A stretch of 64,000 bases of DNA from Rebecca billardiae RCC1528 (GCA_965240325.2 OZ251231.1:310001-374000), one strand, 5' to 3'; numbered from the stretch's first letter, positions 19,253 through 63,126 are shown. Notes: generated by a model not told the origin, from the sequence alone. Numbers and translations: made by a program.

Positions 19253-21547
19253 TCAGCGCCGGCCATGGCCGCCGTCCCAGTGAGCATCAGCAGCATTGCT
19301 GCTGCCGACGCTGGCAGCATCGTCGTCGTCATGCTGATCGTGATCGTCCTCGCCCTCGTCCTCGGACGACCACACCGCGGTGCACGCAAACGGCGTCGCC
19401 GTGGTAGCAGTGGCCCCTCGGCTCCACGCGAGCTCTCGGCGGGTCCTCCGCGGCATCGCACCGCCTGCGCGCGCTGCTGCCGTTGCCACCGGCGCCGTCT
19501 GCGCCGCGTCGCCGTCGTGCTCTCGCGGCTGCAGCGCGCCCTCGTCCCCCTCGCCGCCGCCGCCGCCCGCGTCTGCGGCGGGCGCGCTCGGCCCATCCGG
19601 CGCTGCTGCCTGTGGCCGGCAGACCAGCCGCCCGCCGCTGCAGTGCGCGAATGATCGGCTGGGCCCGCGTGGGTGGCGCGTGGGCGAGCGGCGCTCGTGC
19701 CCCTTGCTCGACGTGAGGGCTTGGCGTGGCCGGCGAGCGGCGAGCGCGCGCACAGACGCACCGTCGCTGCCCCCACGCGCGCCCGCCCGCTCGGCAGGCG
19801 GCGCGGCGCACGCGTACGATGTGTGGGCGATGAGCCACTCGCGCGAGCACAGCTGCGCCACAGCCTGCGGCACGGTGAGCGCGGGCGCGTGCACGGCCAG
19901 CGGCGCGCACCGCCCAGCGCACGGCCCACGCCCCGCGCTGCGGCAGCGCTGCGGCAGCGCGGGCGCGCGCGCCGCGGCCGTGTGGTTGGCAGTCGGCAGT
20001 GGGCGGAGGAGGGCGCGCCGCTCGCCAGGCTCGGCACGGGCGCCGTCGCCGCGCTCGCGCTCGGCACCAGCGCCCCCGCCCCAAGCGCCGACCAAACTCG
20101 CTCGGCTGCCGCCTCCGCCGCCCCACCCGGCGCCACTCCCGGACCTGAGGGCACAGCCGGACTCGTCGAGCTCGAGCCCGCCCTGGCTGACGGCGGTGAG
20201 CGTGCGGCCCATGCCAGCGGGCAACGGCACGAACACGTCTGCGCAGTAGAGCGCCGGCGCGATGCCGCGCGCGAGGGCGCTGTGCGAGAAGCGCGCGAAC
20301 GTGAGCGAGTGCGGCAGCGCCGCCGCCGGCTCGAGCGCGCCGCCGCCCCGCGCCGCGCCGTGCGCCGCCGCCGCGCGCGCGCTGCCCGCTCTCACCGCGG
20401 CAAGCAGCCGCTCTGCCAGACCGGTCTGAAGGCCGAGCGCGTCGCCGTCGACGAGCGCGTTGGTGTTGAAGCGCAGCCCCGGGTCGATGAGGTAGGCGAG
20501 CCCGTCATCCGCGCTGATCATGTAGTCCACCGCCCACACGCCGCTCACGCCGAGCGCGCCCACCAGCGTCGCCGCCTGCTGCAGCGCGTCCGCGTGAGTC
20601 ACGCTCGTCTGAACGAGCGGCGCCGAGTGTCTGCCGCTCAGCTGCAGCACGCTGATGCGGACGAAGGAGCCGAGGACGACGCCGTCGAGCGAGACGCCGA
20701 GCACCGCGACCAGGTGGCCGCGCACGCTCCCCTGCACCATCCCCTCCGCGCCGCGCAGCTTGCCCAGCGCCGAGCGCACGCACGCCGCGCTGTCACACCG
20801 GCGCACGCCGCGCCCGCCGCCATCGACGTCCGACTTGACGTACACGGGCGCGTGGCGCGCGGCGTAGCTGGCGATGGCGTCGGGGAGGCCGGCGGGCGGC
20901 ACGTGCACGGTGAACGGCATGCGCGCGCCCGCGCGCTGCGCGAGCACCAGCGTGCCGATCTTGCGCAGCGCGCGCGTCGAGTTGGTCTCGGGGTCGACGG
21001 CGCGCGTCGGCCGCGGCAGCGAGCAGCGGAGCCGGAGCGCGGCGTCGCGCGAGGCGGCGGAGGCGGGCTCGCGCTCGAGGGCGCGCCGCGTCTGGTCGAG
21101 GAGCTGGAGCGTGCTCAGCGCCGGGCTCACCACCAGCGCCGGCTTGAACCGGCCGATCTCCTCCGCGAGAGCCTCGTGGCTCGGCTGGGCGCGGAGATAG
21201 GTCAGGTAGGAGAGCGCGCGGGCGCCGTCGCGCTCGGCGACGATGGCGCGCGGCTTGGAGCGGGCGTGCGCGGGCGAGTAGTGGGTCCTGCTGCTGCCCC
21301 ACATCACGAACCCCACCTCCCAACCCGCGCGGTGCAGCGCGCCCGCGTGCACGGTGTCCACGACGCCCGAGGCGCTCAGCGGCATCACGATCAGCAGCTT
21401 GCGGCTGCCCGCGCGCATGCGCGCGCACGCGTCGAGGTCGTCGGTGGCGCGCGCGCCGCCGAGCGCCAGGGCGACGGCGCAGACGACGGGCCCGAGCGCG
21501 GCGCCGCGCCACCGGGGCCGCTGCTCGCCAGTGCGCGCTCGAAGCAT
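19253..21547 (-). CDS. Signal-peptide-bearing ATP-grasp-fold protein with Cys-rich C-terminal domain (paralogue 1)
   Basis: Hydrophobic VVCAVALALGGARA; LHRAGWEVG; LRKIGTLVLAQRAG; PVYVKSDVDGGGRGVRRC; MVQGSVRG; GVWAVDYMI..DGLAYLIDPGLRF. Clearly homologous to 59023-60945 and 61143-63029. Confidence 0.8.
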   Translation of the reverse strand: MLRARTGEQRPRWRGAALGPVVCAVALALGGARATDDLDACARMRAGSRKLLIVMPLSASGVVDTVHAGALHRAGWEVGFVMWGSSRTHYSPAHARSKPRAIVAERDGARALSYLTYLRAQPSHEALAEEIGRFKPALVVSPALSTLQLLDQTRRALEREPASAASRDAALRLRCSLPRPTRAVDPETNSTRALRKIGTLVLAQRAGARMPFTVHVPPAGLPDAIASYAARHAPVYVKSDVDGGGRGVRRCDSAACVRSALGKLRGAEGMVQGSVRGHLVAVLGVSLDGVVLGSFVRISVLQLSGRHSAPLVQTSVTHADALQQAATLVGALGVSGVWAVDYMISADDGLAYLIDPGLRFNTNALVDGDALGLQTGLAERLLAAVRAGSARAAAAHGAARGGGALEPAAALPHSLTFARFSHSALARGIAPALYCADVFVPLPAGMGRTLTAVSQGGLELDESGCALRSGSGAGWGGGGGSRASLVGAWGGGAGAERERGDGARAEPGERRALLRPLPTANHTAAARAPALPQRCRSAGRGPCAGRCAPLAVHAPALTVPQAVAQLCSREWLIAHTSYACAAPPAERAGARGGSDGASVRALAARRPRQALTSSKGHERRSPTRHPRGPSRSFAHCSGGRLVCRPQAAAPDGPSAPAADAGGGGGEGDEGALQPREHDGDAAQTAPVATAAARAGGAMPRRTRRELAWSRGATATTATPFACTAVWSSEDEGEDDHDQHDDDDAASVGSSNAADAHWDGGHGRR

Positions 21548-21660
21548 GCCCCGCGACCGTCGTCCTGATGAGACGTCCCCCGGCCGGGCCGGGCCCCCCC
21601 GCCAGCAATGGCCGCCCTTGCGGGTCGGTTCAAGTTTGAGATGTGAGATCACTCATCAGC

Positions 21661-23043
21661 ATGAGCGCCGAGCTGCTTACGGCGGCCGAGGCGGGCGACC
21701 TCGCGCGCATCTCGTCGCTGCTGGACGCGGGCGAGGACGCGAGCGGCGAGACGGCGGAGGGGTGGACCGCGCTCATCCGCGCCACCGTGAATGGCCACGC
21801 CGCCGCCGTCTCGCTGCTGCTCGCGCGCGGCGCGCGCGTGAACCCAACGCGGCTCTGCCACACGCCACTGCGCGCGGCCGCGCTGTATGGGCGCGACGAT
21901 GTGGCGGCGCTGCTGCTCGAGGCGCGTGCCGAGCCGAATCTGCCCTCGCAGGGCTTGCGCACCCCGCTGATGGGCTGCGCCTTCGCGCGCACCGACGACG
22001 CGGAGCGCTACTCGCGCGCCGGCACGCTGGCGCTCGCGCGCCGTCTGCTGCGCGCTCGCGCGGACCCAGATGCGCAGAACGAGGCGGGCGAGACCGCGGC
22101 GCTGCTCGCGGCCGTGCGCGGGGACGAGGAGATGCTCTCGCTGCTGCTCGCCGCCGGCGCCTCAGCCGACATTGCCGACCTCGGCAATCGCACCGCGCGA
22201 GCTCTCGCGCCGGCGCCGTGCGCCGCGCACCCGCTGTGTGCGCCCGCCGCGGATGCCGGCGCTGGCGACGAGGGCGCGGTGCGCATGCGGCACGTGTACT
22301 GCGCGACGCCGCTCGGCGCGCTCGGCGTGCGCGTGTACACCCGCGAGCACCCCGCCGCCTCGCCCGCCCCCGCCGTCCTCGCCCTCCACGGCCAGCGAGA
22401 CGCAGACGCGGTGCGGTGGGAATGGCTGCCGCACGGGCGCCGCTGGCTGTGCGCCGCGCGCCGCGCCCCCGCGTGTGTGCTGCTCCCCAACCTGCACTCG
22501 AACGCGCGCAGCGCGCCGGGGCGCGTGAGGACGGAGGACGACGGCGCGTTGGACGCGGTGTGCGACGCCCTGCGCGCCGTGCTCGAGCAGCTCGTCCCGG
22601 CCGCGCCCGCGCCCAGCCTGGGCCGTGGCGGCGCCGACACAGCGGCGGTGGCAGCAGCGGACACGGCAGCAGCGGTCGTCGTCTGCGGCAAGAGCTGGGG
22701 CGGCGCGCTTGCCCTCGCCTTTGGCGCACGACACCCGGGCGCGTGCGCGCGGCTGCTCCTCGCGTGCCCCTCGCCCGAGCTCAGCTCGCTACCCGACAAG
22801 GCCGCGCACGCGCTCGGCGGCGCCCGGCGCGCGCTCCTCATCTGGGCCGACGACGACGCCACCGTCCCGGCGGCAGAGGCCGTCCCGCTCTGGCTGGCCG
22901 CACTCTCCGCGCCGGCGGCGGGCGGCGGGGCGCGCTTCGAGCTGCGCCGCACGCGCGAGGGCGGGCACTCACTCGGCATGCTGCACAGCGACGACGCCCT
23001 GCGCGCCGCCGTCGACGCGTTCGTGCTGGACGCCGACGACTGA
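21661..23043 (+). CDS. Ankyrin-repeat plus alpha/beta-hydrolase fusion protein
   Basis: About 5 ankyrin repeats (GWTALIRA, HTPLRAA, RTPLMGC, GETAALLA). Hydrolase part: VLALHG, GKSWGG nucleophile elbow, LIWADDDATVP (Asp), GGHS (His). Confidence 0.85.
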   Translation: MSAELLTAAEAGDLARISSLLDAGEDASGETAEGWTALIRATVNGHAAAVSLLLARGARVNPTRLCHTPLRAAALYGRDDVAALLLEARAEPNLPSQGLRTPLMGCAFARTDDAERYSRAGTLALARRLLRARADPDAQNEAGETAALLAAVRGDEEMLSLLLAAGASADIADLGNRTARALAPAPCAAHPLCAPAADAGAGDEGAVRMRHVYCATPLGALGVRVYTREHPAASPAPAVLALHGQRDADAVRWEWLPHGRRWLCAARRAPACVLLPNLHSNARSAPGRVRTEDDGALDAVCDALRAVLEQLVPAAPAPSLGRGGADTAAVAAADTAAAVVVCGKSWGGALALAFGARHPGACARLLLACPSPELSSLPDKAAHALGGARRALLIWADDDATVPAAEAVPLWLAALSAPAAGGGARFELRRTREGGHSLGMLHSDDALRAAVDAFVLDADD

Positions 23044-23187
23044 CGAGCCGGCGGCAGCGGTCTGCGGTGGCCGCCGGTGGGCCCGGTGGCGGCACGCACA
23101 CCGCCCACGGACACGTGTGACTGACCAAGCCGATCAGTCAGTGTATTATATAATAATAAGGACTCAGGTATAGTGATGATGACATGA

Positions 23188-23296
<109 letters not shown>

Positions 23297-23723
23297 ATAC
23301 GTACTCGTCGGTACAGACTACAGTGACTGGCTACAGTCCTGGGCCGTTGGACTGATCGTCTGCCCACGGTATACAACTCTCCGCGCAGCAAGTGACTTAT
23401 TCTTATAATAGTGAGTAGAGTAAGTAGTGGTAGCAGTATTAGTCGGAACGTCTCGTCTATAGTAGCAGTAGTACTGTCAGATAACAGACAACAGTGTTAC
23501 AGTGTGCGGGTAGTTAGCCTCCGCCGGAGTCGTGAGTCGTCGTCATCCGCGCCCGCGCCTTGGGCTTCCTGGGCCAGATGAGACGAGCACCTTCAGGCAA
23601 GCAATAGTTGAGTGCTGAGCCGTGCTGCGCGACTGCGGCGGCACCGCGTCTCGCGACGAGTCAGAAGGCGAACGGAGCGCCGCCGCCGCCTGCAGTCCGC
23701 TGCTGCCGCAGAGCGAGGGAGCC

Positions 23724-25031
23724 TCAGACCGCCGAGGCCGCGTCGTGGCGCTGCGCGTGCAGCATCGCCGTGGTGAGCTGCTCGTCGCCGCCCGCGCCGC
23801 GCGCGCTCTGGATCGTCGCGCGCGCCCATGACTTGGCCGGCGCCGGCGCCTCACGGCGCACGCGCGACGCAACGAACGCGACGGCGAGCGTGGTCGCCAT
23901 CCCAAAGGCGAAGGCGAGGGCGAGGGGGGCGACGGGCGCGCGCGCGGCGGCCGCGCCGCCCTCCGGCGCTCCTGACGCGAGGAGGGTCATCGCCGCCGCG
24001 CCCGCGGGCGGCGTGGCCGGCACCATGCCGGGCATGCCGTACCCGGGCATGCCGAAGCCGGGCATGCCGGCGGTCTCCGCCTGAGCAATCTTTTGCTGCT
24101 GGGCCACCCACGGGTTAGCGCCGGCAGCGGGCGCCGCGCCCGTAGCCGGGTCGGCGGGCGCGGTGGCCGGCATCATGCCCGGCATGCCTGGGAGGCCGGC
24201 AGGCGGCAGCGCCCCCGGGTACGTGCCGCCAGTCGCGGCCCACGGGTTGGCGGGCGGCGCCGTGCCGCCGGAGCCGTCAGCCGCGGGCGCCGGCGCCGGC
24301 ACCCCCGCTCCGGGCATGATGGGCCCAGGGTACGTACCGCCTGTTGCGGCGTAGGGCCCTCCAGCGCCCGGGTTGCCCGGCATGACCGGGCCGTAGCCGA
24401 CCGCGCCGGGCGCGGGCGCGCCGGGCCACCACGCGGGTGCCGCCACCGTGCCGTCGGCGGGGGCCTCGGTGAGCTTCTTCAGGGGCGCGTCCGTGTCTGC
24501 GAGCACGACAGTTGCCGCGGCCGCGGTCGACGCGGGAGGCGTCGCGCCGCCGGCCGCGCCCGCCGCGGGCCAGTAGGGGTTGGGGGGCACGGGGTAGGCG
24601 GCGGCGGCACTTGCGGGCGAAGCGGCGGCGGTGGTGGTGGCGAGCACGCCGCCGGTGGAGCCGCCAGCGCCCGTCGCGGGCGGCGCGGGCCAGAACTTGC
24701 CCGCCCAGTCCTGGCTAGCTGTCTTGGTCGCCGCGCCGCCGCCAGGCGCGCCCGCGTCGCCGGTGGCCGTCGAGCCGTCGGGGGCGACGCCGCCGGGCCA
24801 GTACGGGTTGGGCGGCACCGGGTACGCGCCACCGGTCGGGTCGGCTGGCGTCGGTGTCGCCGCCGACGCAGTGGTGGTGTCAGTCGGCTTCGTGCCGGGC
24901 GCGGGCCACCACGGGTTGTTGGCCATCGGGCCGGCTGGCGCCGACGCCTCGAGCTTGGGGTCGGCGGCGAGGACGCCCGCGCTCGCGCCGAAGAGCGCGA
25001 GCGCAAGGGTGGTCACTCGAGCGCCGCGCAT
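23724..25031 (-). CDS. Type I membrane, low-complexity Pro/Ala/Gly/Thr-rich protein with recurring aromatic-Pro motifs
   Basis: Signal peptide MRGARVTTLALALFGASAGVLA; repeats YPVPPNPYWP x2, WWP x2, GGTYPG x2, GMPG multiple; C-terminal TM LALAFAFGMATTLAVAFVA followed by SRVRRE. Confidence 0.75.
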   Translation of the reverse strand: MRGARVTTLALALFGASAGVLAADPKLEASAPAGPMANNPWWPAPGTKPTDTTTASAATPTPADPTGGAYPVPPNPYWPGGVAPDGSTATGDAGAPGGGAATKTASQDWAGKFWPAPPATGAGGSTGGVLATTTAAASPASAAAAYPVPPNPYWPAAGAAGGATPPASTAAAATVVLADTDAPLKKLTEAPADGTVAAPAWWPGAPAPGAVGYGPVMPGNPGAGGPYAATGGTYPGPIMPGAGVPAPAPAADGSGGTAPPANPWAATGGTYPGALPPAGLPGMPGMMPATAPADPATGAAPAAGANPWVAQQQKIAQAETAGMPGFGMPGYGMPGMVPATPPAGAAAMTLLASGAPEGGAAAARAPVAPLALAFAFGMATTLAVAFVASRVRREAPAPAKSWARATIQSARGAGGDEQLTTAMLHAQRHDAASAV

Positions 25032-25369
25032 GCTGCTGGCGCGAGTGCGGCTCCGGCCGGGAGGCGGCGTCAGTGGGAGGTGAGTCGGACGGACGCCGGA
25101 TGGAGCCACGGCCGCCGAGAGCACTTGCGTCAATGCGTCGTCGTGGCCGGAAAAGCTGTTCGCGAAACGCGCGCCCGCGCCCTGAGATGTGATTGAAAAA
25201 CGGCCTGATTCCTCGGCGCTCATTGGCTGGACGAGAGTCTGTTTTTAGGCCGGGCTGCACCCGGGTGCGCACAAAGAGTAGTCCGGCGCTGGCTGGCTCG
25301 ACTCAACAATCCGGAGCTCGTCTTTTCAAAGCACCGGGACGGACGTGCAATTGTCATCGTCGGGCCACG

Positions 25370-27109
25370 ATGCCGTCGACGCGCGCGAGCATGTCGTCGG
25401 CGCTCGCCGCGACGGCGTTGCTGCTCGCTGCGGTGCCAGCTGCCACCGTCGCGCTGCCGACAGCGCGTTCGAAGCCGCGGCTCGTCGCATCCCGCCTCGG
25501 CCTCTCGCGGGCGGCCGTGCGGGCGGACGGCTCCGCCGCCGATCCCGACGTGGCGGACGGCGCGGCCGCGCACGCGCGCGGGCAGCGCGCGCGCATCAAT
25601 CGCGACTTCACCGCGATCGCGCTCCCCTCGCTGGCCGCGCTGTCGTGCGAGAACCTCCTCTCGCTGGTGGACACCATGTGGCTCGGCCGGCTCTCCGCCG
25701 TGCAGCTCGGCGCCGCGGGCGTCGGCATCTCGGCGACCTACTCGCTCTCCAAGCTGTTCGACGAGCCGCTCGTCAAGACGTCCACGTCGCTCGTGGCGGG
25801 GAAGGAGGACGCGGAGCTGCGCGCGAGCGTGCTCTCGGCGCTCGCGCTCGCGCTCGCGCTCGGGCTGATGCAGCTCGTCGCCTTCACCGCCTTCACGCCC
25901 GCCATCGTCGGCGGGTTTGGCGTGGACGCCGCCTCGGCGATGCGCGCGCCCGCGGCGTCGTACGTGCGGCTGCGCGCGCTGGGCGCGCCGGCCGTGACGC
26001 TGCTGCTCGTGACGCAGGGCATCTTCCGCGCGCTGGGCGACACGCTCACGCCGCTGCTGTGCACGCTGCTCGGCAACCTCGTCAACTGCGCCCTCGACCC
26101 CATCTTGATCTTCGGGTGCAACCTCGGCTGCGGCGGCGCGGCCGCGGCCACCGCTGTGGCGAATTGGGTCACGGTCGTCCCGCTGCTGCTGCTGCTCGGC
26201 CGGCGGCTGGGCGTGGCGGAGCGCGCGCAGCGGCGGAGCGGCGCGCCCGCCGCGCCCGCCACCAGCCGCGCCGACCTGCTCCGCGCCGCGCGCGCCTACC
26301 TCTCAGCGGGCTCCCTGGTGTATGTCCGCACCGTCGGCAAGCTGTGGGGGTACGGCTTTGCGGCGCGCGCCGCCGCCAAGCTCGGCACGGCGCCGGCGGC
26401 TGCGTACGCGCTCACGTTCCAGCTGGGCGTGGCGACGACGCAGCTGTGCGAGGCGGTCTCGCTCGCGCTGCTCTCCCTCGTCTCGCGCGAGCTCACGCGC
26501 CTCGAGCGCGCCGTCGAGGGCGGCCTCACCGCCGCGCGCACCGCCGCGGCGCGCGCGGCCGCGCTGCGCGCTCGTTACGTGGTCACGCTCGGCTGCGTGC
26601 TCGGCGGCGGGCTGGCCGCGCTGCTCTCGGTGGCGACGTGGTGGCTGCGCGGCCGCGCGATCGGCGTGATGTGCTCCGGCGCGTCGTCGGGCGCGGTGCG
26701 CGCCCTCGCCCTCGGCGTGATGCCCGCCGTGCTCGTGACACAGGTGCTGAAGGGCCTCGCCTACCCGGCTAACGCCATCTTGATGGGCGGCCGCGATTGG
26801 CTGCTGTCCGCCGGCGCGATGTGGGCGGCGTCGGGGCTGCTCATCGGCGCGATCCGCTGGGGGATGCCGCTGCTCGCGCCCGCGGGCGCGGCGGCGGTGT
26901 GGGGGCCCGCCGGCGCCGCGCTCTCCGCCGCCGAGCAGTCCGCCGCGCTCGACGTGATCTGGCGCGCGCTCGCCCTCTGCTTTGGGGTGCAGGCGCTCAG
27001 CGCGCTCGTGCGCTACGCGAGCGGCACCGGCCCGTGGCGGCTGCTCAGCAAGTACGCGCCGCTGGGCGGCGCGCGTGATGGCGCGGCGGGCGCGGGTGAG
27101 GGCCGCTGA
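25370..27109 (+). CDS. MATE (DinF/DTX-like) transporter, possibly plastid-targeted
   Basis: IALPSLAALSCENLLSLVDTMWLGRL, YVRLRALGAP, QGIFRALGDTLTPL, NCALDPILIF; N-terminal signal-like plus Arg/Ser-rich presequence. Confidence 0.9.
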   Translation: MPSTRASMSSALAATALLLAAVPAATVALPTARSKPRLVASRLGLSRAAVRADGSAADPDVADGAAAHARGQRARINRDFTAIALPSLAALSCENLLSLVDTMWLGRLSAVQLGAAGVGISATYSLSKLFDEPLVKTSTSLVAGKEDAELRASVLSALALALALGLMQLVAFTAFTPAIVGGFGVDAASAMRAPAASYVRLRALGAPAVTLLLVTQGIFRALGDTLTPLLCTLLGNLVNCALDPILIFGCNLGCGGAAAATAVANWVTVVPLLLLLGRRLGVAERAQRRSGAPAAPATSRADLLRAARAYLSAGSLVYVRTVGKLWGYGFAARAAAKLGTAPAAAYALTFQLGVATTQLCEAVSLALLSLVSRELTRLERAVEGGLTAARTAAARAAALRARYVVTLGCVLGGGLAALLSVATWWLRGRAIGVMCSGASSGAVRALALGVMPAVLVTQVLKGLAYPANAILMGGRDWLLSAGAMWAASGLLIGAIRWGMPLLAPAGAAAVWGPAGAALSAAEQSAALDVIWRALALCFGVQALSALVRYASGTGPWRLLSKYAPLGGARDGAAGAGEGR

Positions 27110-27333
27110 GACGGCCTGGCCTGGCTGGCGCTCACGGCCGGGGCAGAGTCTCGGTGCACACGCGGCAGGCATGACAGCATGTATCATGAGGCGCTGGGCC
27201 GTCATCAGAATCAGTTGACTCTCACTCAGACTCAGATCTCGTCATTCATCGTCAGCAGTAAATCAGTGCCTTCACTCGGTCAGCTGTGTATCCATACCGT
27301 ACAGTACTATTCGTCTTAGTAAACTGTACTGTA

Positions 27334-28844: not shown

Positions 28845-28873
28845 TAGTAGATTCTTAGTTACGTACGCGATCC

Positions 28874-53241: not shown

Positions 53242-53652
53242 TGTCTGTGCCCACTGAGCCACGCGTACGTACGGTGCAGACGGCTGCAGTGCAGTCTGCA
53301 GCAGGCGTCGTAGTAGTCGTCACGTCTCACGACGTCGTAGTCGTATTGAATTAGTATTGTCATATTGATGACATTACAGACATGCATTACTCATTAGGAC
53401 CACGCGGCCCGGCAGACCGTCGCCGCGGGAAGAATGCGAGTCTGCTGCAACCGAGTTGGCACATCGTCGGACGACTCGGAGCCGCAGACTGCGACAGTCC
53501 GAGTCCGACGATGCCAAGTTGCAGCCAAGGGCAAGGCGCCGGCGCTCGACGACTTTCAGCGGTACGACTACGAGCTCGCAGCAGCAGTTGCTCGCGCCGC
53601 GGGCCGCGCGCGTGCCCCCGCGACCCGTCGTCACGGCCATGGGCCGCGTGGC

Positions 53653-55212
53653 CTACGCGACGTCGCCGTCGATGTACGTGTCATAATAGTCCGCTTGCGG
53701 GAGCGTGATCCCGGCGGCCTTCACAGCCGCCGCCGCCTCGCGCGCCGTCGGCTCGTCCGCGGACGCTGCGAGCGCGCGCAGCGCGTTGAGCGAATACTTT
53801 GGGATCATCCCCTCAGAGGGTCCCTCCGACGCTAGGGCGACGAGCGGTCGGACGGCGCCGGCGGCTGCGAGCGCGGGCGCGTGCGCGCCGCGCCCGGCCA
53901 TCGCCAGCTTGGCGAGCGCGTACGCCGTGTACACGCGGTACGCGCCCGGCGGCGCCCACTCGCCCTCGGCCGTGCGCACGTGCGGCCCGCCGTTCGCGCT
54001 GAGCGTACGCAGCAGCGCGGCCGCGAGGCCGGCCGCGGCGAGCGCGGCGCCGAGAGGGCCGTCGCCGTCGTCGCGCACGAGCTCGCCGAGCTGGCGCACG
54101 AGGAGCTGCGCCGCGCTGTGCTGCGCCCCGCCGAACGGGTCGGCCGGGTCGATCTTTGGGGGCAGCGGCGCGCGGCGCAGCCGCTTGAGCAGGGCCGCCG
54201 CGACCGCGCGCGCGCGCGCGCCGCTCGGGTCGGAGCCGGCGAGACGGATGAGCAGCGCTCTCACGGCCTCGCTGTCCGCCTCCGGGGTGCCGAGCGCGGC
54301 GGCCAGGTTGGCGATGGCGGAGGGCGTGCGCGCGACCGCGTCCGCGCCGTCGGCGCCCGCCTCGACGAACGCGCGCAGCACCGCCGCGCAGTCCATCCGC
54401 GAGCCCACCAGCCTCGCAGCCAGCCGCAGTCCGCCCGCGCGCTCCACGGCGGCGCGCGCGCTCGCGCCATCCCAGCCCGGAGCGTCGGGCGAGGCCGCGG
54501 TGCTCAGGTGCGCGAGGATGAGCCCGGCGTTGAGCGGCGCCTGCGCCGCGTAGTACTCCGCGCCCTTGGGCGCAGAGCTCCGCCACGTCTCGAGCAGCGC
54601 GCCCAGCAGCGGCTCGCGCGCGCCGAGCGCGGCGCGCACGGCCGGCGCCGCGCGCGCCATCGGCTCCAGAGCTGCGAGCGTCGTGTGCCGTGCGCTCGGC
54701 GGCGCGCGCGGGGCGACGAGCACGTCGGCGAGCGGGGAGGCGAGCGCGTCCGCCACGGGCGCGATGCGTTCGGCCGCCACCTGCATCGCCACGAACACCG
54801 CCGCGGCGAAGACGAAGGCGTCAACCGCCTCCCACTGCTGCGAGCCGAGCGCCTCGGACAGCCGCTGGCCGACCGACGCGAGCACGCGCGCCGTGCGGTA
54901 CGCGCGCACGACGTCGAAGGCGGCCGCGCTCTGGTAGCCCGCCGCCAGAGCCTTCGCGGCCTCGGCCGCGGGCGCGTCGTCGCCCTCGCGCAGCACGCGC
55001 GCGAGCGCCTCGACGCCGCCCGCGCGCACGAGCGCCGGCGTCGGCTCCAGGTCGGAGCGCACGAGCTGGGTGAGCGCGGCGGCCGCCGCGAGCTGGGCGT
55101 CGGACGTCGCCGCCGCGTTCAGCTCGTGGACGAGCTGGGCTGTCTTCGCGTCGAACTCGGAGCGCGCATCTCCCGACGAGCCGCCGCACAGCTGCGCGAT
55201 GCGCGACAGCAT
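53653..55212 (-). CDS. Armadillo-repeat protein
   Basis: Repeated LVRAGGVEALARVL, VERAGGLRLAARLV, LAAAGAVRPLVALA helical units; ATG at 55212. Confidence 0.75.
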   Translation of the reverse strand: MLSRIAQLCGGSSGDARSEFDAKTAQLVHELNAAATSDAQLAAAAALTQLVRSDLEPTPALVRAGGVEALARVLREGDDAPAAEAAKALAAGYQSAAAFDVVRAYRTARVLASVGQRLSEALGSQQWEAVDAFVFAAAVFVAMQVAAERIAPVADALASPLADVLVAPRAPPSARHTTLAALEPMARAAPAVRAALGAREPLLGALLETWRSSAPKGAEYYAAQAPLNAGLILAHLSTAASPDAPGWDGASARAAVERAGGLRLAARLVGSRMDCAAVLRAFVEAGADGADAVARTPSAIANLAAALGTPEADSEAVRALLIRLAGSDPSGARARAVAAALLKRLRRAPLPPKIDPADPFGGAQHSAAQLLVRQLGELVRDDGDGPLGAALAAAGLAAALLRTLSANGGPHVRTAEGEWAPPGAYRVYTAYALAKLAMAGRGAHAPALAAAGAVRPLVALASEGPSEGMIPKYSLNALRALAASADEPTAREAAAAVKAAGITLPQADYYDTYIDGDVA

Positions 55213-55403
55213 CGTGTCGATGAGCGCGCCGCCAGGCCGCCCGCGCCTCCGCTTGTGCTGCGCGTTGATGTAGTCGGATGTAGTCTCAAGATTCGCGCGA
55301 GCAGAATGATGTCGAGCAGATTTCAGATTCTCGGCGGACCGACTCCCGAGGGAGGGCACGGACCGGCCCCGTGCTCACCGACTTCCAATTCGGACAAACG
55401 GCC

Positions 55404-57641
55404 ATGGCGGGTGCCACAACCGCGGATGGCGACGAGGAGAATGAGCACGCGAATGGGGCGAGCGCGCGGCTGGTGGCGCGGTCTGCGCCGCGCCCGACGC
55501 CGCCGGCGTCGGTGATTGCGCCGGCTCACTTCTATGGCGCCAGCGCGGCGGCGTCGCTCACGCTTGGCGTCAGCCGCGCCGCGACGCAGAGCGCGCGCGC
55601 GGCGGCGGTCGAGGCGGCCGCCACGCGCAAGCGCGCGCGGCACGAGGCCCTGGCGCAGTGGCGGTGCTTCGCCGGGCAGGACGCGGCGCTTGCATTCGCC
55701 CGCCACGAGCCTGCCCAGCGCGTCTGGGCGCGCGAGCTCTCATCCAGCGGCGCGCGCCACTTCCTCGTCGCGAGCGCCGGCGCGTTCTGGCGCGCGTACC
55801 GCTGCATGCGGCCGGACGAGCGGCGGCACTACGAGGTCATCACGCCGGACACGCCGTGCCGCGTGTACTTCGACCTGGAGTTCGACCGCGCCGCGAACCC
55901 GCCAAGCGGCGCCGCGCCCGGCGGCGCCAGCTCCGCCGGCTCGGCGCGCTGGCCGTGCGACGAGGCGCGGATGCGCGCTTTCTGGGCGCTCCTCGGCGAG
56001 CACGCGCGCGCCACGCTGGGGCCTGGGGTGTTCGTCGACGGCTGCGCGTCCGTCGAGCTCGACTCGTCCACGCCGCGTAAGTTCTCGCGCCACGTGATCG
56101 TCACGCTCCGCGCAGTGCCGCAGGCTGGCGCGGTCGCGGGGGCCGACGCGCGCATCGAGGCGGGCGCCGGGGCTGAGGAGGAGGAGGAGGAGGACGCGTG
56201 GGGCATGCTGAGCGCGGGGCCCGAGGTGCTCTTCGAGGACAACGCGCACGCCGGCCGCTGGGTGGGCTCGTGGCTCGCGTGGCTCGAGGCGCTGGCGGCC
56301 GGCGCCGCGTGCGCGCGCGGGTGCGCGTGCGGCGCGCTCGGCGCTGGCGACACGTGTGCGGAGCGGCGGCGGCTGCGCTCGCTCGCGGCGCTGCTCGCCG
56401 TGCGCCCCCCGAGTGCGCCCGCCGAGTGCCCCTCGCCGCCGCCCGCGTGCTGGCTCGTCGACCCGGCCGTCTACTCGCGCCACCGCTGCCTCCGCCTGTT
56501 CAAATCGGCCAAGTTTGGCAAGGGCGGCGCGCAGCTGCTGCCGGCACACTTGAGCGAGGGGCAGCTGTGGCGCATGCCGCACGCGGCGGAGGCGGCGCTG
56601 TTCGAGCGGGCGCTGGTGTGCCCGCACGCGCGGCTCGAGTGGGCCGCCGCAGCGCCGGCGGGGCCGCCGCCGGGGCCGCTGCCGGGGCCGGCTCCGGCGG
56701 TGGGGCCGGCTCAGCCCGCGCCTGTGGCGCCGTTTCCGCTGCCGGCTGCGGCCGCGAGCGCGGTGGCACTCGCGGAGGGCGGCGCCAGCGGCGGCGACGA
56801 CGACGGCTCGGAGGTGGCACTCGTGGGGGCGGACCCCGGCGTGGGCGTGCGCGCGTACACCCGCCGCCTCGCCGCGCCGCGCGCCGAGCTCGCATATCTC
56901 GTGCTGCGCGTGCCGCCCGCGCCTGGCTGCCGCGCGGGCGCGGACGCAGCGCGCGATCGCGCGCCGCTGCCCGCGGCCGACGGCGCCGCGGGCCTGGCGG
57001 CGGCCCCGCCGCGGTTGGTACCTCCGTCGCTGGCCGACGAGCGCGGCGACGCCGTGCTCGAGGCCGTCCGCTGCTGGGCGGCGCGCGCGTGGGCCGCCAA
57101 GTCGTGCGCGCCGTGCACGCTCGCGCCGCCGCGGCTCGTGGCGGGCGCGCGTGCGGAGGCACGAGGCGCGGTCTGCGGCGCAGGCGGCGCGGCGCGGCGC
57201 GGCGGCGTGCGGCTGGTGATGGGCGTGGAGGGCTCGCGTTGGTGCGGCCGCATCGGCCGGCACCACCGCTCGAACGGCGTGTACCTCACCCTCGCACTTG
57301 AGCCGCGCACACCGGCGGCGGCGGCGGCGGAGGCGGAGGCCGCGGCCGGCGCTGCGGGATGCTCACGCGCAGAGCAGGACGCGGCTGCAGCAGCGCCGGC
57401 CGTCGGGCGGGCACTGGTGCCGCTGCCTGCACGCGCAACGCTCTCCCAGCGCTGCCACGACCCCGAGTGCCGAGCGGCGGGGTACCGCGGCGACGAGCTG
57501 CCGCTCCCGCCCGCGCTCACGCATGCGCTGTGGGAGGCCCTCGCCCTGCCGCCGGCGCCTGCGCTGATGTGTCAGGGGCCCGGCCCGCCAGGGGCAGGAG
57601 TCACTGCCGCGCACGGCCCACAGCCCGCACTCCATAACTAG
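55404..57641 (+). CDS. PRIMPOL: DNA primase/polymerase PrimPol (AEP domain + UL52-type Zn finger)
   Basis: HYEVI..PCRVYFDLEF (motif A), KFSRH (motif B), VDPAVYSRHRCLRL (motif C), RWCGRIGRHHRSN...QRCHDPEC (Zn finger). Confidence 0.93.
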   Translation: MAGATTADGDEENEHANGASARLVARSAPRPTPPASVIAPAHFYGASAAASLTLGVSRAATQSARAAAVEAAATRKRARHEALAQWRCFAGQDAALAFARHEPAQRVWARELSSSGARHFLVASAGAFWRAYRCMRPDERRHYEVITPDTPCRVYFDLEFDRAANPPSGAAPGGASSAGSARWPCDEARMRAFWALLGEHARATLGPGVFVDGCASVELDSSTPRKFSRHVIVTLRAVPQAGAVAGADARIEAGAGAEEEEEEDAWGMLSAGPEVLFEDNAHAGRWVGSWLAWLEALAAGAACARGCACGALGAGDTCAERRRLRSLAALLAVRPPSAPAECPSPPPACWLVDPAVYSRHRCLRLFKSAKFGKGGAQLLPAHLSEGQLWRMPHAAEAALFERALVCPHARLEWAAAAPAGPPPGPLPGPAPAVGPAQPAPVAPFPLPAAAASAVALAEGGASGGDDDGSEVALVGADPGVGVRAYTRRLAAPRAELAYLVLRVPPAPGCRAGADAARDRAPLPAADGAAGLAAAPPRLVPPSLADERGDAVLEAVRCWAARAWAAKSCAPCTLAPPRLVAGARAEARGAVCGAGGAARRGGVRLVMGVEGSRWCGRIGRHHRSNGVYLTLALEPRTPAAAAAEAEAAAGAAGCSRAEQDAAAAAPAVGRALVPLPARATLSQRCHDPECRAAGYRGDELPLPPALTHALWEALALPPAPALMCQGPGPPGAGVTAAHGPQPALHN

Positions 57642-57831
57642 GGCATAGCCCTAGTCTTATACGTACGATAGTTATATGTCTACTGTCTAGAGAGTGATGA
57701 CGGCCACTGTCCGAGTGCCACCGATGAGGCGCTCGGCTGTACCGGCTCGTCACGCTCGGCATGGACATGCCACAATCACATTGACATGGTCACTGTCCAT
57801 CATGGTGTCCCCGTCCAGAGCCTGAGTACAT

Positions 57832-58538
57832 GTGGCTGAGTCAGTTTAAATTCCCCTTCGGCGAAGGGAAACTTTTTCCGCGCAAAGCCCGGTCAAAGAA
57901 AGTCGAAACCCGCTGACTCACCCGCAAGCTCAGAGTGGGCCGCCCGTGCGGTTGCCAGCATGCCTGCGGTCGGCCGTCCTGGGCGAGCCGCGGTGATCGG
58001 AGCCAACTGGATGGGCTCGGTCGCAGCCGATGAGTCAGCAGGGAGGTGATCGTAGCGAGCAGCACCGCCGACATGCGGCATGTTCAAGGACGAGGTGCTG
58101 AGTCATGCAGCAGCTCGGCTCGCGGCACGGAGCGGCTCACGTCGGATGGCGGCATGGAGTGATGCCGGCCTCGACAAGCGCCAGACACGCTGCCTACAGG
58201 CCTGACAGGATGCACTGAGCAAGCTGCGCCAGTGGGTGCGGCAGCGACATGCGTCTCTAGCTGCGCCGTGACCTCTTGACGCGCTGGCCGCCGCCCGGCG
58301 CCCAGCGCGCGCGCTGCCGTGCGGCGCGCGGCTCAGGCTGGCAGCAGTCTCAGATCCAATCTGACTCACACTTCTCAGAAATTCAAAAAAATGGATTTTC
58401 TCGCCCAATTTTGGTCCTTCGTCGACGTTCTTGGGCTCTACGTGCTCCTCTCGACGAGGCGCTTCGGGTAGGCTAGCTAACTCGGATCGCGACCCCTGGG
58501 CCTGCACTAAAAAGGGGATTTTAAACTGACTCAGCCAC
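57832..58538. mobile_element. MITE-like TIR element, 707 bp, 4-bp TSD (ACAT)
   Basis: Left ACAT|GTGGCTGAGTCAGTTTAAATTCCCCTT; right AAGGGGATTTTAAACTGACTCAGCCAC|ACAT (27-bp TIR, 1 mismatch). Confidence 0.85.
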
Positions 58539-59022
58539 ACATCGTCATATTGTGCGTCTGAGGTCATGGGTTCAAAACCAGTTTCCAGGTCTCTCTTCGG
58601 AGAGCGTGCGATGAAGGATGGCGCGGCAACCTGCCACCGTGAGCCTTACGCACGTTAAAACAAATAAACTGTATAGTGTATGCCGCCAAGTCTGGCATCT
58701 GGACCAGGTGCCGAGTTGCCTCCCAGGCTCAGATGTGAATTGTGATGCTGATGTGCCGTATTTGCGCGGGGGTGGGTGGCGTTCCGAGGGCGGTGACATA
58801 CTGTATGCGTCCCCTGGATCAGTGTGCCATGCGGCCCTATGATACTCTATGACTATGTCGTGCCACATGTGGCTGCTCACCAGCGTGCTCACCAACGAGG
58901 CCTGCCCGGCTGCCCCGGCCCGCGGCGAGTGTATTATTGTCGCTCCAGAAGGCCCTGGTAGCAAAGGAATGTCCTGTACTCCTCGACGATTGAGATTTCA
59001 CATCGTCGACTTGCAGGGAGGC

Positions 59023-60945
59023 ATGGCAGGGTTCGTCGTTCGTCGTCGTCGGCGGCGGCGCTCCTGGCGCCACCACTGCCTGCTCGCGGCCCTCCTCCTC
59101 CTCGGCGCGGCGCACGGCGGTGCCAGCGGAGGCGCACGCGCGCTGTCGTCCTTACCGGCGCCCGGCAGCACCGCGCCCGAGCGCGGCGCCGACCCGTGCC
59201 ACGCCGCGCGGCTGGGCGGGGGCTCGCGCGTGCTCGTGGTTGCCCTGACGTCGACGTCGAACGGGCCGGGCCTACTGCCGCAGTACGCGACCGACCTGCA
59301 CGGCGCGGGATGGGAGGTGGGCGTGCTGATCTCTCGGCACCAGGCGAGCCGGCACAGCCCCTGGAACGGCCTGTGGAACACCTCGTCGTCGACTAACCCG
59401 ATCCGGTACGCTCGCACGCCACGGGACGGTCTCCCGGAAGCAAGCGCGCTCGAGGCGGCCATCGTGGAGTGGGCGCCGGCCATCGTGCTGGCGGACTACC
59501 GCACGTCGACGCTGCTGATGATCCGGGTAGTCAGTAGGCTCGAGGCCCTGAGCACGCGCACGCAGGCGCAGGAGCGCGCGCTCGCCACGCTTGTCTGCTC
59601 GCTCCCGCGCGCACGCGAGCACTGGGCGCGGCACACAGACAAGCTGCGCACACTCAAGCTGGCGGCGAAGCTCCGGCTACCGTTGGCGTGGCAGACGACG
59701 CTCAAGCCATCGTCCGTGGCCCGCGTGGGCACGGCCGAGCTCGAGCAGCTCGCGCAGCGCCTGCCGCTCGTCGCCAAGACCACTGCCGACAGCGCCGGCA
59801 GGGGCGTGCACATCTGCCGCACGGCACCGCAGCTGCGCGAGGCGCTGCGGCGTGCAGCCAAGGGCAGGACGAGCCTGCTGCTGGAGGCGTGGGTGCAGGG
59901 CGTGTCGGTGGAGTGGGTGGGCGCGGCGGTCGACGGCGAGGTGGTCGCTGGCTTCGGCTACGTCCCTCTCGCGTACGCAGGCGAGACGGGCGCGGGCCTG
60001 ATGTCGCGCACGGCCAACCTGCCCGAGGCGGCGCGCGTGTTTAGCGCGCTGGTGCGCGCGCTCGGCTTCACCGGCGTCGCGCAGCTCGACTTTCGGATCG
60101 AGCATGGCTCGGGGCGCACGCTGCTCATCGACCCGAACATGCGCTTATCCCCGGCTATCGGCCTCCCTGGCGCGGTGCTGGGCCTGCCCACGGGGCCCCT
60201 CGAGGCGCTGCGCGCGCGCGTGCAACAGGGCGCGCCACCCCCGGGCCGCACGGCGCGCACTTCGGCGGGGACTCCAGTGGTGCCCCCGCTGGTGCACGCG
60301 GTCAACGCCTATTCAATCTACTCGTTCTCAACGGAGCAGCGGCTGTGGCCGCTCGCGTACTGCGCCGACGTGTGGACGCAGACGCCGTGGCCGATGGTGT
60401 GGCGCGGCGCCGTCGCGCCCCAGCTCGCCGCAGACGGTGCCGCGTGCACACTCCGGTACTCGGCCGACCCGCCGACGGCTGTGCTGCGGCAGCGCTGCCC
60501 GGCCGGCGGTCCCGCGGACGGCTCGTGTCGCGGGCGCTGCGAGCCGCTCGCGCCCGCCGTGCCCGGGGTGCTCCCAGCCGACTGCACGCGCCTCGCTCAA
60601 GCTTGGTGTGAGCAGATCTTCGACTGGGTGCGAGCGCACTCGTCGTGCGCGCCCGCTGGCTCGGTCGCGCACCTGCGGCGCAATCTCGAGCTCGCGTCAG
60701 GAGAGCCCGTGCTGCTGTGCGGCGGGCCGGCGGCCGAGGCGGCCGAGGCCGGCGCGGGTGGTGCGGTGGCTACTGGCCGCCACGCGGATGCCGACGCCGG
60801 ACTGCTGCGCCAGCACATCAGCACCGCCAGCACTTTGTCGGATGCTGACCTGCTGATGGCGGGCGACTACGCGCCGCGGCGGCAGTGGCAGCGGTATTGG
60901 AATCTGTCAGAGGCGACGTACCACAGTAGTGGGAGTCGACGCTGA
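59023..60945 (+). CDS. Signal-peptide-bearing ATP-grasp-fold protein with Cys-rich C-terminal domain (paralogue 2)
   Basis: Basic N-region + LLAALLLLGAAHG; HTDKLRTLKLAAKL; LPLVAKTTADSAGRGVHIC; LLEAWVQG; GFTGVAQLDFRI...LIDPNMRL. Confidence 0.85.
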   Translation: MAGFVVRRRRRRRSWRHHCLLAALLLLGAAHGGASGGARALSSLPAPGSTAPERGADPCHAARLGGGSRVLVVALTSTSNGPGLLPQYATDLHGAGWEVGVLISRHQASRHSPWNGLWNTSSSTNPIRYARTPRDGLPEASALEAAIVEWAPAIVLADYRTSTLLMIRVVSRLEALSTRTQAQERALATLVCSLPRAREHWARHTDKLRTLKLAAKLRLPLAWQTTLKPSSVARVGTAELEQLAQRLPLVAKTTADSAGRGVHICRTAPQLREALRRAAKGRTSLLLEAWVQGVSVEWVGAAVDGEVVAGFGYVPLAYAGETGAGLMSRTANLPEAARVFSALVRALGFTGVAQLDFRIEHGSGRTLLIDPNMRLSPAIGLPGAVLGLPTGPLEALRARVQQGAPPPGRTARTSAGTPVVPPLVHAVNAYSIYSFSTEQRLWPLAYCADVWTQTPWPMVWRGAVAPQLAADGAACTLRYSADPPTAVLRQRCPAGGPADGSCRGRCEPLAPAVPGVLPADCTRLAQAWCEQIFDWVRAHSSCAPAGSVAHLRRNLELASGEPVLLCGGPAAEAAEAGAGGAVATGRHADADAGLLRQHISTASTLSDADLLMAGDYAPRRQWQRYWNLSEATYHSSGSRR

Positions 60946-61142
60946 TATGTAGTATGTACGACGACATGCAGCCTGCTGAGATATCAATCGGCGGCGTCGG
61001 AGAGTAGTGGCATCCGCGTCGTAACTTGATGTGTCTTGACTGTCTTTAGTCATTGACGAATGATTGATGATGCTGCCGATGACAGTGCCCACCGGCCGCA
61101 CGCGGCAGCAGCGCGGCGAGCACGCGACTACGAGCGCAGGCA

Positions 61143-63029
61143 TCACACGCGTCGACTACTACTGTACACCGGTGTCGCCTCCGACAGATTCCAATACCGA
61201 CGCCACTGCCGGCGACCGGCGCCCGCCATCACCTCGGTGCTGACAGTGTGCGAGCGCAGCCCGTGGGCACCCGCGTAGTGACTGCCATCAGTGCCCAACT
61301 CCGCACCGCCGGTGCCGGCCTCGGCCGTCTCAGCCGTCGGCCCGCCGCACAGCAGCACGGGCTCGCCTGACGCGAGCTCGAGATTGCGCCGCAGGTGCGC
61401 GATCGAGCCAGCGGGCGCGCACGACGAGTGCGCTCGCACCCAGTCGAAGATCTGCTCACACCAAGCTTGAGCGAGGCGCGTGCAGTCGGCTGGGAGCACC
61501 CCGGGCACGGCGGGCGCGAGCGGCTCGCAGCGCCCGCGACACGAGCCGTCCGCGGGACCGCCAGCCGGGCAGCGCTGCCGCAGCACAGCCGTCGGCGGGT
61601 CGGCCGAGTACCGGAGTGTGCACGCGGCACCGTCTGCGGCGAGCTGGGGCGCGACGGCGCCGCGCCACACCATCGGCCACGGCGTCTGCGTCCACACGTC
61701 GGCGCAGTACGCGAGCGGCCACAGCCGCTGCTCCGTTGAGAACGAGTAGACTGGATAGAAGTTGACCGCGTGCACCAGCGGGGGCACCACTGGAGTCCCC
61801 GCCGAAGTGCGCGCCGTGCGGCCCGGGGGTGGCGCGCCCTGTTGCACGCGCGCACGCAGCGCCTCGAGGGGCCCCGTGGGCAGGCCCAGCACCGCGCCAG
61901 GGAGGCCGATGAGCGGGGACAGGCGCATGTTCGGGTCGATGAGCAGCGTGCGCCCCGTGCTCCACTCGATCCGAAAGTCGAGCTGCGCGACGCCGGTGAA
62001 GCCGAGCGCGCGCACCAGCGCGCTAAACACGCGCGCCGCCTCGGGCAGGTTGGCCGTGCGCGACATCAGGCCCGCACCCGTCTCGCCTGCGTACGCGAGA
62101 GGGACGTAGCCGAAGCCAGCGACCACCTCGCCGTCGACCGCCGCGCCCACCCACTCCACCGACACACCCTGCACCCACGCCTCCAGCAGCAGGCTCGTCC
62201 GGCCCTTGGCTGCACGCCGCAGCGCCTCGCGCAGCTGCGGTGCCGTGCGGCAAATGCGCACGCCCCTGCCGGCGCTGTCGAGCGAGGTCTTGGCGACGAG
62301 CGGCAGGCGCTGCGCGAGCTGCTCGAGCTCGGCCGTGCCCACGCGGGCCACGGACGATGGCTTGAGCGTCGTCTGCCACGCCAACGGCAGCCCGAGCTTC
62401 GCCGCCAGCTGGAGTGTGCGCAGCTTGTCCGTGTGCCGCCCCCAGTGCTCGCGTACGCGCGGGAGCGAGCAGACAAGCGTGGCGAGCGCGCGCTCCTGCG
62501 CCTGCGTGCGCGTGCTCAGGGCCTCGAGCCGTTTGGCCACTTGGACCATCAGCAGCGTCGACGTGCGGTAGTCCGCCAGCACGATGGCCGGGGCCCACTC
62601 CACGATGGCCGCCTCGAGCGCGCTCGCTTCCGGGAGACCGTCCCGTGGCGTGCGAGCGTACCGGATCGGGTTAGTCGACGACGAGGTGTTCCACAGGCCG
62701 TTCCTGGGGCCGTGCCGGCTCGCCTGGTGCCGAGAGATCAGCACGCCCACCTCCCATCCCGCGCCGTGCAGGTCGGTCGCGTACTGCGGCAGTAGGCCCG
62801 GCCCGTTCGACGTGGACGCCAGGGCAACCACGAGCACGCGCGAGCCCCCGCCCAGCCGCGCGGCGTGGCACGCGTCGGCGCCGCCCTGGGGCGCGGTGCT
62901 GCCGGGCGCCGATGAGGACGACAGCGTGCGTGCGCCTCCGCTGGCACCGCCGTGCGCCGCGCCGAGGAGGAGGAGGGCCGCGAGCACCAGGCGGCGACTC
63001 CTGATGCATCGGCAGTGAGGACTCATCAT
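61143..63029 (-). CDS. Signal-peptide-bearing ATP-grasp-fold protein (paralogue 3, inverted duplicate of paralogue 2)
   Basis: Near-identical to 59023-60945 over most of its length; convergent orientation; intact ORF. Confidence 0.85.
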   Translation of the reverse strand: MMSPHCRCIRSRRLVLAALLLLGAAHGGASGGARTLSSSSAPGSTAPQGGADACHAARLGGGSRVLVVALASTSNGPGLLPQYATDLHGAGWEVGVLISRHQASRHGPRNGLWNTSSSTNPIRYARTPRDGLPEASALEAAIVEWAPAIVLADYRTSTLLMVQVAKRLEALSTRTQAQERALATLVCSLPRVREHWGRHTDKLRTLQLAAKLGLPLAWQTTLKPSSVARVGTAELEQLAQRLPLVAKTSLDSAGRGVRICRTAPQLREALRRAAKGRTSLLLEAWVQGVSVEWVGAAVDGEVVAGFGYVPLAYAGETGAGLMSRTANLPEAARVFSALVRALGFTGVAQLDFRIEWSTGRTLLIDPNMRLSPLIGLPGAVLGLPTGPLEALRARVQQGAPPPGRTARTSAGTPVVPPLVHAVNFYPVYSFSTEQRLWPLAYCADVWTQTPWPMVWRGAVAPQLAADGAACTLRYSADPPTAVLRQRCPAGGPADGSCRGRCEPLAPAVPGVLPADCTRLAQAWCEQIFDWVRAHSSCAPAGSIAHLRRNLELASGEPVLLCGGPTAETAEAGTGGAELGTDGSHYAGAHGLRSHTVSTEVMAGAGRRQWRRYWNLSEATPVYSSSRRV

Positions 63030-63126
63030 TGTCGGCCGCCACGAACTCACGAAGCGATTGGAGATTCATCAAGCGAAAGTGGATGACGAACGATTCATCA
63101 GTGGCCGGCGCCGGAACAAGCCTTTA

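Follow-up and report, generated by a model that had tools for sequence, protein, structure and literature searches.

Haptophyte ATP-grasp proteins with a signal-peptide-like leader and a cysteine-rich extension as candidate ligases of the secretory pathway

Three related genes in one window

The stretch of DNA considered here, referred to as the window, comprises 64,000 nucleotides (nt) of Rebecca billardiae RCC1528 (GCA_965240325.2 OZ251231.1:310001-374000; G+C ~70-77%, positions counted from its first letter), and it carries three genes, A, B and C, whose products combine an ATP-grasp body with a hydrophobic leader and a cysteine-rich extension. An initial annotation, made from the sequence alone, had described the three open reading frames (ORFs) as paralogues, and both the frames and their kinship have held up: the proteins of B and C are 92% identical, and A, which shares ~30-35% identity with either, is still retrieved with C as the phmmer query (1e-29). 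The hydrophobic N-terminus, the GWEVG motif, both ATP-binding lysines (DK/RK; VAKT/YVKS), the D-x-x-G-R-G-V loop and the Cys tail named by that annotation have likewise all been found in the sequences, the last with the pattern YCADV ... QRC ... C-x-GRC-x-PL ... W-x3-H ... C in A, B and C. Read from end to end, these are four-part proteins, consisting of a putative signal peptide of cleavable type, an ATP-grasp body, a Cys-rich extension and a variable tail.

Gene C (61143-63029, - strand) encodes 628 amino acids (aa) and has supplied the sequence behind our structure model. Its signal-peptide-like hydrophobic core (aa 14-25; 62955-62990, -) is followed by an ATP-grasp body (aa 60-461; 61647-62852, -) that equals an entire protein of the prokaryote-like sister group introduced below. 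Within this body, the ATP-binding elements (62286-62429, -) comprise the Lys of DKLRT (aa 201-205), the strand Lys of VAKT (aa 245-248) and the D-S-A-G-R-G-V loop (aa 251-257), and the metal-binding elements (61923-61982, -) comprise the Asp in LDFRI (aa 350-354) and D-P-N-M-R (aa 365-369). The Cys-rich extension (aa 441-563; 61341-61709, -) holds eight of the ten family-specific Cys. Gene B (59023-60945, + strand) encodes 640 aa from the Met at 59023, the frame being open back to 58849, and displays the same order of elements: an Arg-rich n-region before the hydrophobic core (aa 19-30; 59077-59112, +), D-P-N-M-R (aa 370-374; 60130-60144, +), the Asp of which is aligned to the Glu of E-x-N in D-Ala-D-Ala ligase (Ddl) and in the sister profile, and the Cys-rich extension (aa 446-568; 60358-60726, +). 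The two genes converge tail to tail within an inverted duplication, whose left arm (59081-60766) is complementary to the right arm (61301-62986) at 97% over 1,686 nt across a spacer of 534 nt. Both proteins carry N-x-S/T sequons at aa ~115 (W-N-T-S) and ~610 (W-N-L-S) that are constant across the B-type copies of the genome, the second one inside an otherwise fast-diverging C-terminal tail.

Gene A (19253-21547, - strand; 764 aa from the first Met) is a divergent member that contains low-complexity inserts and ends in an acidic tail, which the family profile, built from an alignment of 16 paralogues, recovers at E 3.5e-158. A basic n-region precedes its signal-peptide-like hydrophobic core (aa 15-32; 21452-21505, -), and the first conserved Cys (aa 41) follows after a gap of only 8 residues. 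The metal-site motif reads D-P-G-L-R (aa 355-359; 20471-20485, -), with Gly where the Mg-binding Asn is expected. The Cys-rich extension, measured from YCADV to the last conserved Cys (19634-20248, -), contains a Gly-rich insert of ~60 aa, which has been considered as an intron and rejected as such; since excision at the obvious GT...AG pair would remove a conserved Cys motif, the insert is treated as putatively coding.

Fold, metal site and kinship of the family

Domain models hardly recognize these proteins. In the Pfam scan, B and C remain below cut-off (12-16 bits vs 20-27 for PF02222, PF07478, RimK and CPSase_L_D2) and A gives no match; NCBIfam scores amount to 10-19 bits against cut-offs above 140, the Ddl models TIGR01205 and PRK01372 reaching 17-19 bits vs 243-246. 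Because these scores are sub-threshold, ATP-grasp homology rests on profile and structure comparison. When the family profile is compared with all PDB sequences, D-Ala-D-Ala ligases are matched best (7e-12), followed by biotin carboxylases, RimK, PurK and cyanophycin synthetase, and the alignment to Ddl spans the strand Lys, the Gly-rich loop and the metal site, placing D-P-N of the family over E-V-N of Ddl. An AlphaFold2 (AF2) model of C residues 48-628, calculated from the 16-paralogue alignment, has a predicted local distance difference test score (pLDDT) of 76 and a predicted template modelling score (pTM) of 0.80, with the ATP-grasp body mostly at 85-96. Searched against the PDB by Foldseek, this model retrieves ATP-grasp enzymes only (E ~1e-12), which bears out the fold that had been proposed for the three genes. 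In VIA, the highest Z-scores have been obtained for 2pn1 (19.1), PurK (18.0) and PylC (16.9), with 286-355 residues aligned and matches spanning model residues 12-518; RimK, LysX/ArgX, a ligase of ribosomally synthesized and post-translationally modified peptides (RiPP), L-amino-acid ligases and DcsG are also among the structural matches. The ESM Atlas contributes bacterial ATP-grasp_3/CPSase_L_D2 proteins with a template modelling score (TM) of 0.76-0.82 by target. It is thus practically certain that the A, B, C family consists of ATP-grasp enzymes.

The catalytic residues are kept in 94-100% of the family members. Both ATP-binding lysines (model positions 155 and 200) are invariant, D-x-x-G-x-G-V occurs in 90-97% of the members, and the Asp of D-F-R-I as well as D-x-N-x-R are invariant or near-invariant; the strand Lys and the Gly loop align to Ddl, and both lysines together with the loop align to the sister-family profile. 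The atypical D-P-N/G motif to which the initial annotation had drawn attention is indeed present, as D-P-N-M-R in B and C and as D-P-G-L-R in A, but it is not peculiar to these copies. The metal-site Glu is replaced by Asp in 31/31 family sequences, against Glu in 97% of the sister group, and as the Pro of D-P-N varies among members, the signature is better written D-x-N-x-R. Since Asp is found in all family members, the exchange is a lineage signature rather than an oddity of three copies, and only A is further changed: it is the sole sequence of the 31 aligned that is devoid of Asn at the metal-site column, its paralogue L023 having kept the residue. Without the Mg-binding Asn, the product of gene A is probably impaired or non-catalytic, and we regard it as a candidate pseudoenzyme, a possibility that deserves serious weight although it falls short of even.

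The next tier of matches (E 1e-30 to 1e-21) is formed by ~400-aa proteins whose sequence opens directly with the first beta-strand, no hydrophobic leader preceding it; their Pfam matches are to CPSase_L_D2/ATP-grasp_3. Aligned by hhalign, the profiles of family and sister group agree with a probability of 100 and E 2.5e-45 over 365 columns, sister columns 4-391 of 403 corresponding to C residues 60-461. Both groups share the pre-ATP-grasp motif AGF/W-E-V, R/C-S-L-G/P, both lysines, the Gly loop, x-N-x-R and the C-terminal DV-PW. The sister proteins differ in carrying E-x-N-x-R (97%), in having none of the ten Cys and in lacking both a signal peptide and the ~100-aa extension; conversely, E-x-N-P-R-P, HDVPWDDP and the leaderless ~400-aa layout, which mark the sister type, are not found in the haptophyte proteins. 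Three sister-group sequences, P0025, P0026 and P0037, are tandem fusions with two ATP-grasp bodies in 718-808 aa. The ten family-specific Cys (C positions 54, 187, 442, 470, 487, 497, 501, 524, 537 and 561) occur in 26-30 of 30 family members vs 0-2% of 102 sister proteins; an eleventh (C position 260) is common to both groups. The extension, about 100-120 aa in length, starts after the shared DV-x-VP-x-PW motif (HDVPWDDP in the sister proteins), past which the latter have no counterpart, and follows the pattern C ... C ... C-x(3-10)-C-x3-C-P-L ... C ... W-x3-H-x2-C ... [FL]-C. An ESM Atlas feature search has yielded no relatives of this module, the best score of 0.80 being at noise level, and AF2 predicts the tail poorly when given alone (pLDDT 58, pTM 0.33), compared with pLDDT ~65-88 within the full-length model. 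Relative to the sister group, the haptophyte proteins have, on this comparison, apparently gained a signal-peptide-like leader, ten Cys, the ~100-aa extension and Asp in place of Glu.

The family had been taken to consist of three genes; the genome holds 21 loci, as counted in six-frame searches of the whole source assembly (72 Mb, 41 contigs), which returned an identical set with gene C and with the family profile as query. They comprise a young B-type group of 77-92% identity that is spread over four contigs, several older groups and the A/L023 pair. Outside this genome, a hidden Markov model (HMM) search of 1.84 billion cluster representatives has given 32 matches below 1e-30, ~25 of which also span the Cys-rich part. 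All named members are haptophyte and belong to Diacronema lutheri (KAG8457241.1 and KAG8457323.1, labelled 'ATP-grasp domain-containing protein' in UniRef), Pavlovales sp. CCMP2436 (KAJ1639522.1 and KAJ1639396.1) and Scyphosphaera apsteinii (MMETSP1333). As the remaining members are unnamed metagenome or read-assembly proteins, restriction of the family to haptophytes is likely, not proven. A word-index protein search has returned only P0001 for the gene C query and only the query itself for the Scyphosphaera protein, and a single-protein scan of viral contigs, by which only close relatives are detectable, has found no relative. In the maximum-likelihood tree, 31 family and 70 sister sequences are split by one branch (Shimodaira-Hasegawa-like approximate likelihood ratio test, SH-aLRT, 100); B and C fall within a species-specific expansion, and A pairs with L023, a protein of the Pavlovales CCMP2436 type joining them less tightly. 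Identity within the family descends to ~20-30%.

A fourth kind of locus is represented by three copies, L013, L014 and L015, which have a common break at profile position 320/321, and in L013 (1376-1509, -; contig G000:C5) a canonical GT-AG intron separates the Met and Arg codons of D-P-N-M-R. Because its splicing restores the invariant Arg, we take the family loci to be real eukaryotic genes; the database protein P0001, which derives from this locus, reads through the intron. B, C and the B-type copies L005-L008 are without introns. The DNA similarity of the dispersed B-type copies (85-92%) ends within ~50 bp of the coding sequence (window positions 59048-60930 and 61093-63046 compared with L005-L008), so that little beyond the coding sequence has been duplicated, and spread by retroposition or element capture would fit this picture. 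In a quick scan around B/C, L005, L006 and L007, no shared hairpins or terminal repeats have been found. The ratio of nonsynonymous to synonymous substitution rates (dN/dS) among the young copies is 0.45-0.71 in the core region, which is weak purifying selection, as expected of recent duplicates. One B-type copy of ~82% identity, L008 (G000:C1:2160473-2162189), is split across two overlapping frames, owing either to a true frameshift, which would make it a pseudogene, or to faulty assembly.

Three further ORFs of the window deserve mention. Just upstream of gene B, an ORF of 756 aa (55371-57641, +) weakly matches the Pfam model of the Herpes_UL52/UL70 primase zinc motif (23 bits, E 5.8e-5) and could be the primase of a virus-like or mobile element. 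A 466-aa ORF (21643-23043, +) contains ankyrin repeats (Ank_2, 2e-20), weakly matches an alpha/beta-hydrolase and points away from gene A, ~95 bp separating the two start codons, and a further ORF (25193-27109, +) contains a MatE transporter domain (E 3e-14).

Location, chemistry and substrate

The leaders consist of a basic n-region, a hydrophobic core of 9-14 aa and small residues thereafter, and a strongly hydrophobic 9-aa core has been found 0-23 aa after a Met in 24/30 members. The N-terminal cores fall below the length needed to score as membrane spans, which fits cleavable signal peptides rather than membrane anchors. The hydrophobic N-terminus recurs across independent species and is retained in a complete MMETSP transcript ORF (P0151). 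In A, L011, L016, L018, P0012, P0014 and P0015, the spacer from the core to the first conserved Cys measures only 5-13 residues and is often acidic, so that no space is left for a plastid transit peptide. A strong membrane span near the C-terminus, followed by a short tail, occurs in a single paralogue, L016 (P0003; L016:894-2897, +, on contig G000:C26); this layout would be that of a type I membrane protein whose enzymatic part faces the lumen. The short tail includes Y-N-Y-L, which matches the Y-x-x-hydrophobic pattern of sorting motifs. Finally, the conserved Cys number ten, an even count, and are missing from the cytosolic-type relatives, which is consistent with disulfide bonding. Together, these features make a secretory-pathway location of the family probable.

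Concerning the substrate, the only guide is an indirect one, the gene contexts of the sister proteins. Ten have been read, seven of which are informative, and the readable sister genes lie in operon-like prokaryotic contigs. Four of the seven are surface-polysaccharide loci: P0030 is flanked by glycosyltransferase, Wzy, Wzx, Wza and Wzc genes; P0029 adjoins genes for glycosyltransferases of families 2 and 4 (GT2/GT4), a methyltransferase and Wzx; P0039 adjoins Wzx and a second ATP-grasp gene; and P0042 overlaps a Wzy gene, after which a GT4 gene follows. An acidic-glycan substrate is proposed because sister proteins are often encoded inside such Wzx/Wzy/glycosyltransferase loci; taken by itself, this assignment, though preferred to other substrates, is tentative and falls short of even. 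Haptophyte organic scales and coccoliths are made in Golgi-derived vesicles from acidic polysaccharides, whose carboxylate charge controls calcium binding. In the mechanism that we propose, the proteins would enter the endoplasmic reticulum (ER), where the ten Cys would form five disulfide bonds, and would act as soluble lumenal enzymes of the ER or Golgi, one paralogue being anchored as a type I membrane protein. Lumenal ATP would turn a carboxylate into an acyl-phosphate, which would then be joined to an amine or a hydroxyl (a thiol being also possible, given the chemistry of the superfamily). The likeliest acceptors would be uronic-acid carboxyls of Golgi-made acidic glycans destined for scales or the cell covering, and the many paralogues would differ in acceptor or nucleophile. 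As a whole, the interpretation as secretory ATP-grasp ligases acting on acidic glycans is the one we somewhat favor. A more far-reaching version, in which the first ATP-grasp family of the eukaryotic secretory pathway came from a bacterial exopolysaccharide locus into a haptophyte ancestor, acquired a signal peptide together with a module rich in disulfides, and now amidates or esterifies uronic acids on Golgi-made scale or coccolith polysaccharides, thereby tuning charge and calcium binding, is doubtful.

Several observations weigh against the favored interpretation. The signal-peptide call is based on hydropathy and charge only, the B-type copies carry a 28-aa Ser/Thr/Ala/Pro-rich linker after the core that is readable several ways, and no ER/Golgi retention signal, including the KDEL type, has been found in the proteins, which may simply be exported into surroundings poor in ATP. 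Instead of pairing in disulfides, the Cys could serve as zinc ligands. With regard to the relatives, three of the seven informative contexts lie outside glycan loci, and the sister proteins are called prokaryote-like from their length, the absent leader and the contexts read, the clearly prokaryotic ones being those with operon-like contexts or NCBI assemblies; moreover, the sister family has no curated NCBIfam name, the nearest model being PRK06849 ('hypothetical protein'), far below cut-off. A full-text literature search has furnished no amino-acid-amidated haptophyte glycan. The weak constraint on the recent copies and the frameshift in L008, one of the 21 loci, belong on the same side.

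The same location and chemistry are compatible with secreted or scale-associated proteins or peptides as substrates, to which amino acids would be attached at Glu/Asp side chains or C-termini, or in which RiPP-type intramolecular cross-links would be formed. Many ATP-grasp enzymes act on proteins or peptides, RimK, LysX/ArgX and the RiPP ligase being among the structural matches of our model; a large lineage-specific set of paralogues suits diversified targets, and the three non-glycan contexts of the sister genes would be accommodated. However, no precursor-peptide or carrier-protein partner has been seen, the top structural matches are of the small-molecule type (2pn1, PurK, PylC) rather than RimK or RiPP ligases, and the four polysaccharide loci speak for glycans, so that we judge protein substrates unlikely. 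The nearest solved folds, namely 2pn1, PurK, PylC, L-amino-acid ligases and DcsG, would in turn suit lumenal or vacuolar ligases of small molecules, with dipeptides, organic acids conjugated to amino acids, or comparable metabolites for export as their products. Yet a membrane anchor, as in one paralogue, and an extension rich in disulfides are more typical of Golgi enzymes that act on macromolecules, and the known eukaryotic metabolite ligases of the ATP-grasp fold are cytosolic, which renders this explanation improbable.

A third alternative does without the secretory pathway: the leader would either open a bipartite presequence for the plastid or periplastid compartment or be a start-codon artefact, and the Cys cluster would bind zinc in a reducing compartment. 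Haptophyte plastid proteins likewise begin with a signal peptide, the linker of the B-type copies could pass for a transit peptide, C-x(3-10)-C-x3-C ... H-x2-C looks like a zinc site, and the start codons are predicted from sequence. This explanation is nevertheless of low probability, for the short gap between core and first Cys leaves many members no room for a transit peptide, the leader recurs in independent species and in the complete transcript ORF, two of the ten Cys (C positions 54 and 187) lie far from the tail, and one paralogue combines a signal peptide with a C-terminal membrane span. That the family at large consists of catalytically dead binding proteins, of which only the fold persists, is very improbable: the Gly for Asn in A, the dN/dS values of recent copies and the frameshifted copy point in this direction, but B, C and 29 of the 31 aligned sequences keep all canonical ATP/Mg ligands and the Arg of D-x-N-x-R, a retention that is unexpected of a dead enzyme family at ~20-30% identity.

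ATP-grasp ligases are known as cytosolic enzymes, and no case in which carboxylates are ligated at the expense of ATP within the lumen of the ER or Golgi is known to us. In agreement with the initial annotation, which knew of no description of such chemistry for the eukaryotic secretory pathway, full-text literature searches have yielded no paper on an ATP-grasp enzyme with a signal peptide, in the Golgi/ER lumen, or in haptophytes or coccolith biology. What is already known is the fold, the chemistry and the automatic ATP-grasp label on the Diacronema homologues; new are the predicted compartment, the expansion within one lineage and the Cys-rich module. If the favored interpretation is true, a 21-gene family of lumenal ligases becomes a candidate modifier of scale and coccolith polymers or of the surrounding proteins, and it provides an example of a prokaryote-type cytosolic enzyme that has been refitted for the oxidizing secretory pathway by a signal peptide, ten Cys and a C-terminal module. 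Should the origin and function outlined above be true as well, the family would perform a glycan modification undescribed in eukaryotes; if the proteins are inactive or mislocalized, the finding reduces to an expanded orphan ATP-grasp family.

Comparison with characterized enzymes

A metal site with Asp-x-Asn instead of Glu-x-Asn is present in human inositol-trisphosphate 5/6-kinase ITPK1 (Asp281, Asp295, Asn297), an ATP-grasp protein that VIA matches to the C model with Z 12.0-12.3. This precedent suggests by analogy that D-x-N is compatible with catalysis, although ITPK1 is a kinase and not a ligase, is cytosolic, and is a much weaker structural match than the leading ones. Among solved structures, Ddl is the best match by sequence, as described above, and presents its ligand motifs in the same order, whereas it differs in its N-terminal domain and its C-terminal part and is cytosolic. 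The CPS-like ATP-grasp protein 2pn1, PurK and PylC share the three-domain ATP-grasp fold with the proteins described here; they differ in having only 12-13% identity, no signal peptide, no Cys-rich extension and unrelated substrates.

With respect to chemistry, the closest counterpart is the C-terminal ATP-grasp domain of Cj1438 from Campylobacter jejuni, which amidates the C6 carboxylate of capsule glucuronate (PMC11800379). This domain belongs to the TupA-like subfamily, whose Pfam model gives no match to A, B or C at E up to 1, and it differs further in being cytoplasmic, fused to a glycosyltransferase and free of a Cys-rich extension. The reaction that it carries out, the ATP-driven amidation of a uronic acid on a surface polysaccharide, is nonetheless the same as the chemistry proposed here for the haptophyte family.

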